Positions 1,465-43,425 of a stretch of 64,000 nt of DNA are shown piece by piece; positions within the stretch are counted from its first letter, which is position 1; each line of letters opens with the position of its first letter. The stretch comes from Asterias rubens. Its lineage: Eukaryota. Under the pieces are notes generated by a model that ran no database searches, was not told the origin of the DNA, and saw only the letters and a program-made list of their open reading frames with translations. The translations under genes were made by a program, and so were the position numbers. The stretch covers positions 12,214,001 to 12,278,000 of the forward strand of contig NC_047063.1 of NCBI RefSeq assembly GCF_902459465.1. The letters are read 5' to 3'.

Positions 1465-1828
1465 NNNNNNNNNNNNNNNNNNNNNNNNNNNNNNNNNNNN
1501 NNNNNNNNNNNNNNNNNNNNNNNNNNNNNNNNNNNNNNNNNNNNNNNNNNNNNNNNNNNNNNNNNNNNNNNNNNNNNNNNNNNNNNNNNNNNNNNNNNNN
1601 NNNNNNNNNNNNNNNNNNNNNNNNNNNNNNNNNNNNNNNNNNNNNNNNNNNNNNNNNNNNNNNNNNNNNNNNNNNNNNNNNNNNNNNNNNNNNNNNNNNN
1701 NNNNNNNNNNNNNNNNNNNNNNNNNNNNNNNNNNNNNNNNNNNNNNNNNNNNNNNNNNNNNNNNNNNNNNNNNNNNNNNNNNNNNNNNNNNNNNNNNNNN
1801 NNNNNNNNNNNNNNNNNNNNNNNNNNNN
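1465..1828. other. Assembly gap (364 N)
   Basis: Run of N; it covers the DCP1 exon-3 acceptor. Confidence 0.99.
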
Positions 1829-1974
1829 ACAATAACCATCTCAATGCGCTTTATATGAGAGCCCTGATCATTGGGCCAATAACATTCCTTCAATCTTTCT
1901 CAGCTCCCTGGGGAGTATACAACAGTGTTATGGGCAACGATAGCGCTCAAAAGGCTTTATCCATACACAAAAAT

Positions 1975-2187
1975 TAGGTTAAGCACGAAAATAGCTTGCT
2001 TATTTTACACATGTTACTGGCCAAAATTTCATGCCATATACATTGCTTGTGACGTGACTTGTATTTAGCTATCGTTTACTTAGCATAACAATTGAGTGGA
2101 GTCTTGGCCGGTATTCTGATATTACTAAGCACGGAATATTTTGCTTAAGCAGAATTTTTTGCTTAAGCAGCTCTATGAAATTGGGCC
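1975..2187 (-). mobile_element. MITE family E, truncated, inverted relative to 138-381
   Basis: Its reverse complement aligns along the internal region of the 138-381 copy. Confidence 0.85.
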
Positions 2188-2525
2188 CTGCTCATATGGC
2201 TAAGCACAGTTTTTTTTTAAGCAGTATTATCTGCTCAAGTAGCTCTAGTGAGATTGGGCTTAATGAAATAAAAAGCAAACTGGAACAGCGCCCTCTTGAA
2301 TTGCAATCGATAAAACCATGCCGCCGATGTTATTAGCTTGAGGTTGAAGTGTGAACATGAAATCCATTTCTGGGAAGAAGCGTCAAGGCTGTCAAATTGA
2401 TGTTTGTCTAACATTTCTTCGCAGTGCAATCGTTAGAGACAGCCTTGGTGGAATTTGGCGTCGAGTTGAGCCAAGGGTTTTAGTAATAATTTGGCGTGTG
2501 CTGTGGTGGGACACTAAAACAAAAA

Positions 2526-2680
2526 GAAAATTACTTCTTTCTTGAAAACTACGTAACTTCAAAGGGAGCCGTTTCTCACTAACGGTGTTTTACACTATCA
2601 ACCTCTCCCCATTACCCGTTACCAAGTAAGGTTTTATGCTAATAATTATTTTGAATAATTATCAATGGTGCCCACTGCCT
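2526..2680 (+). mobile_element. Kolobok-like TTAA MITE family A, 3' half
   Basis: Ends cccactgcct|ttaa; internal sequence matches full copies. Confidence 0.8.
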
Positions 2681-3218
2681 TTAAAGAGAAAAACTGGCAA
2701 AAAATATTCCATCTTGAGAGTTTAGGATTCAAAATATTTTATGACATTGTAGGAAATTTAAAGTATCCATGTATACCAATAAATTCTTCTTCAAATTACC
2801 TATTTTGATCTGCGAGACTACCAAACTACAAGTTGGATAAACACCTAGGGAGTTGGAATTCTCTGAGATGAATTGGGTCGTTCCGGTTTCCATACAGGTT
2901 GATAAATCATTGGAAATATTACCTCTTTTATCATCATAAAAACCAAGTTGTCACAAACGGGAAAAAGCAATTTATTTGTAAAGTTAATGATGCATAAACA
3001 ACTTATTCTCCGTTATCAGACTGGTGCATATTTTGGTATAACTTCAAAACATAATGCCTTAAAATGTAGTGTGAGTTGGCTTGTCATGTTTTTATCTTTC
3101 TTCGTCTAAAAAAGCAAGTATAGCTCAATTGAAAAAAATATATGCAAAAAAATCACATGGTGCATGTACATTGAGGAATAATGCAAAACAATATATAATG
3201 TCCTTCGATCCTCTTTAA

Positions 3219-3597
3219 AGGCAGTGGACACTATTGGTAATTGTCAAAGACTAGCCTTCACAGTTGGTGTATCTCAACATATACATGAACTAACAAACCT
3301 GTGAAAATTTTAGCTCAATCAGTCATCGAAGTTGCGAGATAATAATGAAAGAAAAGGAAAAAACCTTGTCACACAAAGTTGTGTGCGTTTAGATGGTTGA
3401 TTTCAAGACCTCAAGTTCTAAATCTGAGGTCTCGAAATCAAATTCATTGAAAATTACTTCTTTCTCAAAAACTGTCACTTCAGAGGGAGCCGTTTCTCAC
3501 AATGTTTTATACCATCAACCTCTCCCCATTACTCATCACCAAGAAAGGTTTTATGCTGATAATTATTTTGAGTAATTACCAATAGTGTCCACTGCCT
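3219..3597 (+). mobile_element. Kolobok-like TTAA MITE family A (TIR AGGCAGTGGACACTATTGGTAATT)
   Basis: TTAA on both sides, about 24-bp TIRs, AGG...CCT termini. The superfamily call rests on TTAA plus RR..YY ends. Confidence 0.9.
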
Positions 3598-4007
3598 TTA
3601 ACTTATAAATGTTTGTGTTTTTTTATGCCTCTGAAAAAGGTTTGGTTTGGATGGAAAGCTAAGGCCATCTACCCTACTCATTTTAAACATTATACAAACC
3701 AATTCCAGAGACTAATATTTCCAGACAATACCAAATTAATCGTCTTGGCAAAGGTCCCATAAACACTGCAATTAATTCAACTGAGCTTTATTGCATTGGA
3801 CATAAGTCACTTTGACTGTGTGTCAATTAAAAAGCTGTTGAATGCCAATGATTAAAGGGATCTCAAAATAATGTTAAAAAAACAGTTTTTATGCAGCGCA
3901 AAGTTACAGTGAATTCTCAAAACGCTTTTGGAAAGTCAGAAAAAAAACCAGGACTGTTGAAGAAAGAAAAATTTAAAAAAGGAACCACACAGTGTACACA
4001 AAAAAAG

Positions 4008-4160
4008 TTGGGATTAATCCTAACTCGAGTTAGGACTCGAGTAACCCGTCCTAACTTAGGATAGGTTCAATGCGTCCTACATATCTGGATATGAAACTGA
4101 CCCCGTCCTAAGTCCTAGATTAATCCTAAGTTAGGAAGAGTTTGGTGAAAACGACGGCTG
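4008..4160 (-). mobile_element. MITE family H (rich in tcctaagttagga); inverted homolog at about 44037-44210
   Basis: The reverse complement of 4060-4160 aligns to caccaaactc...aggacttaggac...atcctaagttaggatgggttactcg. Confidence 0.7.
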
Positions 4161-40869: not shown

Positions 40870-40885
40870 ACACTAGAGGGCAGCA
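40870..40885 (+). promoter_or_regulatory. CTCF-like motif ACACTAGAGGGCAGCA
   Basis: 15/16 match to the canonical CCACTAGAGGGCAGCA core. Confidence 0.55.
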
Positions 40886-41009
40886 GACTTGTCAGGTAAA
40901 ATCCACATGAGGTCAAAAAAAAAATTGAATTCACCTGGTCTGCTGACACCAAGCATTCTAAAGTCTCCCACTGAATTTGTGTGCATGTTGAAGTGAAACA
41001 CAATAATGA

Positions 41010-41025
41010 CCAACAGAGGGCGCTA
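41010..41025 (+). promoter_or_regulatory. CTCF-like motif CCAACAGAGGGCGCTA
   Basis: Matches CCASYAGRKGGCRSY with one mismatch. Confidence 0.55.
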
Positions 41026-41700
41026 TTTACTTTATCTTGATTGACTTTGAATACATGTCTGGAACTTAAAGACACTCAGGGAAGATTTAACACTGAGCAC
41101 TAGTTTATGCCAGTCTAGTTCCTGTATAAATGAGTACCACCTAATTGTGTGACGTGCAACAAAAAGCAACATGGCAGGTTCAACTGGGGGTTACAGACTC
41201 CTCAGGGAGGTTGGATTTGATTTTATTTTATTTGATTTGATTTACTCTTATTTTTACCTTATATACGCAATCAATCATGTTTTTGTTATGATTGGGGCCG
41301 GGGGGGGGGGGGGGCTTGTAATAACCAAAAAAAACAACATTCTGTAATACCAAAGACATTTTAAAACTCAAAAGTTGATTACAGACTGCACAGATAGGCT
41401 AGAGTGCGGCCTAAACCCTTCTATTTCTCTTGTCTATACCAAGTTGTTTTGACTTGGATAGGATTAGGACTTTGACTTTCAAAATGCACTCAATGGAAAT
41501 AAGTGCCAGCTAATTACCTAGGTATTGTTAAAACCTTTATGTCAACAAGCACAAAGGTCAAAGACCACAGCTTCTCACACCTCTTTGAAGACTCAAGGCA
41601 GGGGGTATAGGTACCAAGACAACAAGGCAGGATCATGGAGTCAAAGGTCTCTGTTGCATTCAAGCAGTTTAACATGAAGACATGAGTATCCCCTTGTTAA

Positions 41701-42048
41701 AGACAGTGTACACTATTGGTAATTTTCAAAGATCAGTCTTCTCAAACCTGTGAAAATTTGAGCTCGGTCGGTCGTCGGAGTTGCAAGATAACTATGAAAG
41801 AAAAAAACACCCTTGTCACACGAAGTTGTGTGCGTTTAGATGGTTGATTTCGAGACCTCAAGTTCTAAACTTGAGGTCTCGAAATCAAATTCGTGGAAAA
41901 TTACTCCTTTCTCCAAAAGTAGGTCACTTCAGAGGGAGCTGTTTCTCACAATGTTTTATACCATCAACCTCTCCCCATTACTCGTTACAAAGTAAGGTTT
42001 TATGCCAATAATTATTTTGAGTAAAATTACCAATAGTGTCCACTGCCT
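41701..42048 (+). mobile_element. MITE family A with an internal deletion
   Basis: TTAA TSDs; lacks the cacttggtgtatc...aaaataac block. Confidence 0.9.
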
Positions 42049-42774
42049 TTAAGACAAGCTTGTAAATACGAGAAAGTGGTTGATACATAGTACAAGGTTT
42101 TTGGGAGTGGTCCTGACTGAGCCATATTAACGAGGGTTGACTGCACGTGTTCCTTCTGACATACATTTTACATGTGTGCACACCTACTTCTCAAGCCCCA
42201 ACTTGAATGCTTGTGAATGTGGCTTTGTGATGTTCGGCCAGTATAGTATTTCTTTTCAATCACACTCATTATAATCTTGCTACACATACAAATGAACTTG
42301 CTTGAATATGGTTAAGAACATACATGTAGGGTTGGGACGTTTAATCGGTTAACTGGTTGAACAACGAAATCGATTTCCAATTACCTTTAAACATTTAAAC
42401 GAACATAGCCACTGTTAAAACCTGCCTTCAAATGATTGACATCCCTTTTGTTTGTGGATTAACAGTCTTATCTTAATCCCTACAAAACAAAACATTGTAA
42501 TAAATCATCTACAATTTGTTGTTTTACATTTTCCACCTACATCCATGTACATGTGCCACCAGTGTGGTTTGTGGTTTTGTGGAAGTTTTAGAAAGAGTTG
42601 TGTTCTAATTTTAATCCTGATCCATTCTGGATGTTTAGTGTTTACATCTGCTCCTTTCAAGCAAGTGGCAGGGGTTAAGAGTCACCGCAGACCAAAAAAG
42701 TCTGAAACTGGAATCCAGTTCTTAGGAGGAATATTTAATTTGAATTGACAGCATTTCCACCTTTTATACGAATA

Positions 42775-43120
42775 AATAATAATAATAATAATAATAACCG
42801 TATTTATAACGCGCCTTTTGCCAAAGGATACAAAGCGCCAGGTATTATTACTGCAAGGAGTGTGGCAAATTTTTGAGATATAAGACCTAATCCTTAAGCA
42901 CCATGTAAAGGTTTACAAGGTGCTGTGGCACAATATGCTGCCAATCCAGCCAGGAACACAGGGGCGAACCCTTCTCTTTTCGAAGGACGAAGCAATGGTT
43001 AAGTGTCTTGCTTAGGGACACAAGTGTCATGGCTGGGGATTCGAACCCACACTCTGCTGATCAGAAACACCAGAGTTTGAATTCGGTGCTCTTAACCGCT
43101 CGGCCACGACACTCCCACAC
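42775..43120 (-). mobile_element. tRNA-derived SINE with CORE-like and partly deleted Deu domains and a (TTA)n tail
   Basis: A box TGGCCGAGCGG (43096-43106), B box GGTTCGAATCC (43037-43047), then gtgtccctaagcaagacacttaacc and a simple-repeat tail. Confidence 0.85.
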
Positions 43121-43425
43121 TTTTGATCAATATGGAGTTTATGTTCCCTGGTTTTGTTTAATTCCAGGGTTAGAGTTCTAGATCAATAAGCCTGGCTTAC
43201 TAAATTTGAAGAGAAATACAGGATCTGTTTAAACCCGGCTCAAAAGTAAAATAAAAGTCTGAAATTAATCATACTTGAACTGTAGGCTCATACTTCAGAT
43301 TGGAATTGGTAGAAACAGCTAAAAGGCTAAACAAAAGTCACACGTTCCATGTAAACATTTAGGAACATAAATTCAGATGAACACACCTAAAAAACATCCC
43401 AATATGTTCTTATTGTTTGTCTTAC

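Follow-up and report, generated by a model that had tools for sequence, protein, structure and literature searches.

The stretch of DNA analyzed here, 64,000 nt from the starfish Asterias rubens (NC_047063.1, 12,214,001-12,278,000, forward strand; hereafter the window, whose own positions serve as coordinates throughout), carries the first exons of two genes placed head to head: DCP1, on the minus strand, and the ion channel gene Cav1, on the plus strand. Exons 2 and 3 of DCP1 are separated by ~41.96 kb. The interpretation favored here, with a probability of about 0.6, is that the great length of this intron 2 is real and its position ancient, within a bilaterian-wide DCP1-Cav1 pair, that Cav1 starts between the two genes, and that a conserved element within the intron (17959-18041) is an embedded enhancer whose likeliest target is Cav1. 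Under this interpretation the main promoter and first coding exon of starfish Cav1 occupy the ~2-kb intergenic space, outside the intron. Most of intron 2 is unconstrained, repeat-bearing DNA, in which one element at the least (17959-18041) is under strong constraint, and possibly two others more weakly so. The structure of the genes, the 5' exon of Cav1 with its splice, the pattern of conservation, and the arrangement across phyla are observed; enhancer function and the gene it acts on are inferred. It is proposed that enhancers embedded in DCP1 have kept the pair and its oversized intron together.

The DCP1-Cav1 pair across bilaterians

Among the species examined, the head-to-head arrangement of DCP1 and Cav1 is found in nine others from six phyla: the starfish P. 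miniata and A. planci, the sea urchin S. purpuratus, the crinoid Anneissia, the hemichordate Saccoglossus, the amphioxus Branchiostoma floridae, the scallop Pecten maximus, the annelid Owenia, and the nemertean Lineus. The neighbor of DCP1 carries Ion_trans, GPHH, and Ca_chan_IQ domains, which identify it as an L-type channel. In most species, the starts of the two genes are 0.5-4 kb apart. Intron 2 of DCP1 interrupts one and the same codon position and is 12-42 kb long in every species measured (n = 6, five phyla), namely ~42 kb in A. rubens, 27 kb in A. planci, ~21 kb in Saccoglossus (N runs included), 17 kb in Branchiostoma, 30 kb in Owenia, and 12 kb in Lineus. The small exon 2 that precedes it, together with its intron position, is present in the crinoid, hemichordate, amphioxus, annelid, and nemertean genes as well, and the DCP1 gene of Pecten spans 110 kb. 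The homologs recovered varied with the query. With full-length Saccoglossus DCP1, vertebrate sequences dominated and there were no echinoderms among the matches listed; with the EVH1 region alone, A. planci was the sole echinoderm match recovered; and a search with DCP1 exon 1 returned chiefly short read-through fragments.

Linkage of DCP1 and CACNA1 as such is already published. One paper lists dcp1a/b and cacna1d in a single conserved microsyntenic block found in many animal genomes, the Wnt5-7 block, whose members are wnt5, wnt7, fbxl14, atxn10, erc1/2, cacna1d, cacna2d, ninj1/2, and dcp1a/b (PMC8851819). The Wnt genes that this source places in the wider block are absent from the window. 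The block described there shares the dcp1a/b-cacna1d linkage with the present locus; however, neither the head-to-head orientation, nor a conserved long DCP1 intron 2, nor an element within it figures in the available part of that account (PMC8851819). What is new here is comparative, namely that orientation and an oversized intron 2 are kept across phyla, and that one concrete element, 17959-18041, can be pointed to within the intron.

Conservation within DCP1 intron 2

Conservation of the whole intron, and of the element, was assessed against one other starfish, A. planci, for which the comparison locus (L003) contains the entire DCP1 gene. The P. miniata locus (L002) covers the Cav1-proximal 24 kb, including the first 5 kb of DCP1 intron 2. 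In blastn, the window aligns to A. planci at the three DCP1 exons, the Cav1 exon 1 region, Cav1 exon 2, a repeat, and 17959-18041 (Table 1). The core of this element, ~75 nt at ~90% identity, includes TAATTAAT, ATCAAT, and AGTCATAAGTCAT motifs. The element is also collinear, with relative positions along the intron of 0.61 (A. rubens) and 0.65 (A. planci). A search for it gave no match in the loci of the sea urchin, crinoid, hemichordate, and P. miniata, which cover small parts of the intron or gapped sequence. On sequence grounds the element best fits a DNA-level regulatory element, and we infer that it may be a cis-regulatory enhancer which, from within DCP1, would act on a neighboring gene, most likely Cav1.

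Two other identities were considered for 17959-18041 and rejected. A coding exon is ruled out by a 1-nt indel between the species, along with substitutions that show no periodicity. A non-coding RNA is ruled out in that there is no significant or common fold in the two species and no Rfam match. Two weaker candidates elsewhere in the intron are listed in Table 1. The match at 7514-7608 reached E = 8e-4 in a local search that was picked post hoc, and a GC-rich patch adjoins it in both A. rubens and A. planci.

The initial annotation had singled out eight islands in intron 2 as GC- and CpG-richer, without recognizable transposons, and potentially conserved regulatory modules. All eight are indeed richer in GC than the intron mean (0.40-0.45 vs. 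0.366), and none overlaps repeats detectable inside the window. However, the ratio of observed to expected CpG (CpG o/e) is raised in just four of them (1.02 at 6750-7550, 0.99 at 10600-10950, 0.90 at 31800-32300, and 0.84 at 38100-38900, with an intron mean of 0.52), and is ordinary (0.54-0.70) in the other half. Their conservation was not borne out: no island body (0/8) aligns to the A. planci intron or the P. miniata locus, and only a weak block at the edge of island 1 does so. For five of the eight islands, the longest open frames were scanned against Pfam, with no result above noise.

A different account of the intron is that transposons and satellites lengthened it neutrally, that a compact common promoter region or chance holds the pair together, and that the element serves DCP1 itself, in splicing or transcription. 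At least 19% of intron 2 consists of repeats detectable within the window alone, including families of ~390 nt and ~350 nt; SINE-like (short interspersed nuclear element-like) families are present in ~10 copies, and there is a 1.2-kb satellite. The two starfish introns differ in length (42 vs. 27 kb), alignable sequence is very scarce in intron 2, and, with the two starts as close as they are in most species, a common promoter region alone could keep the genes adjacent. On the other hand, among the introns of DCP1, intron 2 ranks first or second in length in six species of five phyla with fairly compact genomes, which makes independent neutral growth of one and the same intron unlikely, and the ~75-nt core has outlived the split between starfish orders amid scrambled surroundings. 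Neutral growth as the whole explanation is therefore considered unlikely.

The start of Cav1

RNA was mapped over 44.3-50.2 kb of the window, at low depth. Contigs came from runs X1 and X18 and raw reads from runs X23 and X24, the latter giving nearly zero depth on DCP1 and Cav1, with the bulk of their reads derived from a repeat at 44.5-44.9 kb. Contigs of both X1 and X18 span 47199/47246-47381 and join 49671/2 over a GT..AG intron of 2,289 nt. Their upstream limit is 47199, and the splice runs from 47382 to 49672. Between 45.3 and 47.2 kb there is zero RNA depth, besides isolated low-depth or repeat-derived contigs. The first exon of Cav1 thus delimited by RNA is intergenic and lies ~1.9 kb from the DCP1 5' end. 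Exon 2 encodes a peptide that matches the public A. rubens model P0001 (which maps to LR699093.1) at 100% identity, and a 7.5-kb RNA contig begins at this exon and runs beyond 49987 into PFEHLILLT.

Public models of other echinoderms agree with this structure. A short exon before exon 2 encodes MDNFRT, MDKFRT, MQRQRT, or MDRTST in echinoderm Cav1 models; the start peptide M-D/Q-x-x-R-T/P-G is common to those of asteroids and echinoids, and the crinoid model begins MDRTSTG. The A. planci annotation has a full-length Cav1 (2,277 aa) whose start is separated from the ATG of DCP1 by 1.7 kb. The region around exon 1 is conserved with both other starfish, and its blocks at 47063-47445 probably comprise the Cav1 promoter and 5' untranslated region (UTR). 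Together, the splice seen in RNA, the conserved exon 1 region, and the A. planci annotation support an intergenic position for the promoter and first exon of Cav1.

The initial annotation had instead suggested that antisense Cav1 promoters and exons may lie inside DCP1 intron 2, and had pointed to a human precedent in which upstream first exons of CACNA1C (exon 1a) and CACNA1D lie within DCP1B and DCP1A. A chordate precedent of this kind does exist. As annotated, Cav1 of Branchiostoma floridae has its first coding exon (MPPRSRVRIRSRRQTPTPTGSTKSKDSSSMTPTMD; L007, ~37815-37919, minus strand) antisense within intron 3 of DCP1, and the conserved exon 2 follows 36 kb downstream. Mouse Cacna1c has an upstream exon 1a and transcription start site (TSS) near Dcp1b, a reverse-strand gene, and this exon precedes exon 1b by >80 kb (PMC5008151); in human CACNA1C, a long 5' region precedes the TSS of the shorter transcript (PMC10172764). 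Among the loci examined here, a Cav1 exon or TSS nested in DCP1 occurs in amphioxus only, those of A. rubens and A. planci being intergenic.

Could intron 2 nevertheless host alternative Cav1 promoters and first exons, in an overlap like that of amphioxus and mammals? For such a promoter, island 1 would be the strongest candidate: its CpG o/e of 1.02 is close to the 1.09 of the DCP1 promoter, and its CCAAT motifs are followed by GTGAGT. In addition, in X1 and X18 alike, the long Cav1 contig opens precisely at the acceptor of exon 2, with a 30-nt overlap to the contig that holds the exon 1 junction. Such a break may mark a branch in the assembly graph, with another 5' sequence also joined to exon 2. 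However, the only junction listed at this acceptor is 47382 to 49672, no second upstream partner being among them, and none of the loose ends or joints listed at 49671 or 47199 points upstream. The gene models of A. rubens, P. miniata, and A. planci all put the Cav1 start between the genes, and the short start peptide is common to models from A. rubens, P. miniata, sea urchin, and crinoid. Furthermore, the intron contains no exon-like conserved block, its lone strong element is frame-shifted between species, and the islands cannot be aligned to A. planci or P. miniata. Nested Cav1 starts in the starfish intron are accordingly judged rather improbable; none was found, although RNA coverage is thin and the intron lies outside the mapped stretch. 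On the available data, and with RNA coverage of this kind, Cav1 5' ends downstream of 45.3 kb combined with unconserved islands, the outcome that the initial annotation itself named as speaking against its proposal, is largely what is seen.

Beyond exon 2, the Cav1 gene has an unusual intron. The sequence ATATCCTT at 49988-49995 is the 5' splice site of a U12-type AT-AC intron. This site is used in RNA, since the contig departs from the genome at 49987 and stays in frame (PFEHLILLT). The window includes neither the branch site and 3' AC end of this intron nor exon 3, whose absence means that the intron exceeds 14 kb. Many public echinoderm models run through the U12-type site and stop at 'EWKYPF', which yields truncated 'Cav1-like' proteins of 110-180 aa. 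Within this long intron, a non-coding block at 62224-62343 (core TGTTGCTAAGTGAT...GTAAAGAGTAAAGTTCAC) is conserved with P. miniata and is a candidate Cav1 intronic regulatory element.

DCP1 anatomy and the assembly gap

The DCP1 structure given by the initial annotation, a minus-strand gene with an intron 1 of 1.6 kb and ~42 kb between exons 2 and 3, has the right coordinates, with a caveat on the exact length that comes from an assembly gap. In RNA contigs the 5' UTR reaches at least 45237, contigs of 2.4-2.6 kb ending at exon 1, and similarity to other starfish extends to ~45303. The donor and acceptor of intron 1 can be read straight from the letters. Exon 3 was also matched by blastn to exon 3 of A. 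planci and of amphioxus, and exon 4 is outside the window. The N run at 1465-1828, the sole gap in the window, cuts exon 3 with its left edge, so that the readable part opens mid-codon, and borders ordinary intronic DNA with its right edge. Judged from the A. planci protein (..FVYAR-SASP-YNGF..), the gap hides ~11 coding bases and the exon 3 acceptor. With the acceptor and first codons of exon 3 in the gap, the 3' boundary of intron 2, the frame across the gap, the exact length, and the continuity of the sequence cannot be checked. The exons follow one another in the order and direction seen in A. planci, whose intron in this position measures 27 kb and holds one collinear conserved element.

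A misjoin at the gap, such that exon 3 would not truly lie 42 kb from exon 2, is scarcely credible: the gap does touch exon 3 and conceal its acceptor, and inverted repeats (138-352/1969-2188) flank it, but exon order is identical in A. planci with its 27-kb intron, the element at 17959-18041 has an equal relative position in both introns, and a long intron 2 is usual in other phyla. The inverted copies themselves, at 138-352 and 1969-2188, are 89% identical over 222 nt, enclose both DCP1 exon 3 and the gap, and may have caused the assembly to break there.

A further similarity was noted beside exon 2. At 43467-43545, ~75 nt of intron 1 abutting this exon align to the hemichordate and crinoid loci at 69-71% identity, which may reflect a splicing signal for the 41-nt exon, or may be merely an effect of T-rich composition.

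DCP1 as a possible bystander gene

Genomic regulatory blocks, as Kikuta reportedly described them in 2007, are said to consist of a target gene and a bystander gene whose introns hold the enhancers of the target. Blocks of this type, for example wnt7-atxn10, have been treated in a study whose main text mentions neither DCP1 nor CACNA1 (Irimia 2012, PMC3514665). The present locus resembles them in that DCP1, an unrelated housekeeping gene, stands beside the tissue-specific Cav1 across phyla and has an oversized intron with at least one conserved non-coding element inside. It differs from them in that Cav1 encodes an ion channel rather than a developmental regulator, and in that there is one robust element with a putative target. 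From the chordate CACNA1C/DCP1B overlap, with which the starfish locus shares orientation, neighbors, and a conserved exon 2 that takes its first exon in phase 1, it differs in that the only supported starfish first exon is intergenic and no nested exon was found. The bystander-gene reading of DCP1, which the initial annotation had put forward, is plausible but unproven. The head-to-head linkage across phyla, the long intron of ancient position, and one conserved element speak for it, whereas the nested Cav1 exons and promoters and the conserved islands that had been part of the same proposal find no support in the data obtained.

Several points weigh against an embedded Cav1 enhancer as the reason for the long intron. 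The gene served by the element at 17959-18041 could be DCP1 itself or a different member of the block, for instance wnt5 or wnt7, and Cav1 is not a classical developmental regulator. The size of intron 2 could have been inflated neutrally, given the 15 kb difference between two starfish. There is just one robust conserved element in the 42 kb of the intron, and weak collinear matches are only marginally enriched, with 10 observed vs. 1-10 in 20 block permutations. Moreover, when the two valvatid starfish are compared, conserved blocks abound in the intergenic region and the Cav1 introns, but the initial 5 kb of DCP1 intron 2 hold few.

A bolder version of the favored interpretation would make the 5' introns of DCP1 a bilaterian-wide regulatory landscape of Cav1, with enhancers of the 17959-18041 type and with island 1 as an upstream promoter of the chordate type, this embedding having locked the pair together since the bilaterian ancestor; it is regarded as doubtful. 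If Cav1 enhancers or alternative promoters do reside in the DCP1 intron, the locus would be a clean regulatory block built on an ion channel instead of a developmental gene, and would offer an explanation for a linkage that goes back to the bilaterian ancestor. It would likewise provide a simple invertebrate model for human CACNA1C/DCP1B and CACNA1D/DCP1A, two regions in which it is difficult to tell to which gene a disease-associated non-coding variant belongs.

Features of the window

The positions of the features discussed above, and of the most widespread repeat family, are collected in Table 1.

Table 1. Exons, introns, conserved sequences, and repeats of the A. rubens DCP1-Cav1 window.
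Feature	Position	Strand	Remarks
DCP1 exon 1, coding part	45092-45226	-	Open reading frame, ATG at 45226; gtaagt donor, GT at 45091-45090; tblastn, 93% identity to A. planci DCP1
DCP1 intron 1	43467-45091	-	1,625 nt
DCP1 exon 2	43426-43466	-	41 nt, EKTDIEGSLFVYAR; gtaag donor from 43425
DCP1 intron 2	1465-43425	-	~42 kb; 3' end and start of exon 3 inside N gap 1465-1828
DCP1 exon 3, visible part	1348-1464	-	YNGFMIMNRLSMNNLTEPVTKDLEFQLQDPFLLYKTAQ; gtgagt donor at 1347; 92% identity to A. planci residues 64-102; cut by gap
Conserved non-coding element	17959-18041		A. planci, 79% over 87 nt; 64 bits vs. control maximum of 32.6; sole strong intron-to-intron match
Weak second candidate element	36038-36149		Two adjacent collinear matches, 36.8 and 34.0 bits, barely over control maximum
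Weak third candidate	7514-7608		Edge of island 1; three short collinear motif blocks; 31.1 bits, under whole-intron control maximum
Island 1	6750-7550		Most CpG-rich patch of the intron; GC 0.437, CpG o/e 1.02; two CCAAT motifs; no alignment to A. planci
Conserved blocks around Cav1 exon 1	47063-47445	+	blastn: A. planci at 47063-47169 and 47267-47445; P. miniata at 47262-47445
Cav1 exon 1	47199-47382	+	ATG at 47364, MDNFRT plus one base, then GT; matches public model P0001; RNA contigs X1, X18
Cav1 exon 2	49672-49987	+	Acceptor ttgttcag/GG; no in-frame ATG at its start; followed by ATATCCTT at 49988
~390-nt repeat family, copies	3213-3602, 8240-8636, 25768-26158, 41743-42052, 51266-51645, 55022-55415, 56804-57204, others	both	

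The ~390-nt family is interspersed, with about ten copies in the 64 kb, on both strands, at 75-94% identity. The satellite of the DCP1 intron occupies 19573-20739 (1.2 kb) and is built of 107-nt units in 10.8 copies, with a GC content of 0.44 and a CpG o/e of 0.16. An Rfam histone 3' UTR stem-loop (GGTTCTTTTCAGAACCACCCC) was detected in the DCP1 intron on the plus strand, at 40670-40715, scoring 36.9 bits against a gathering score of 34; it has no histone reading frame upstream and no A. planci alignment. A transfer RNA scan of the whole window gave zero genes. Repeat copies at 34029-34293, 42772-43049, and 43799-43880 share a core that also matches the P. miniata, crinoid, and amphioxus loci and may be an old SINE-like core domain common to deuterostomes. 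Lastly, the Cav1 intron contains a young tandem triplication of 145 nt at 58418-58852, the copies of which are 98% identical.

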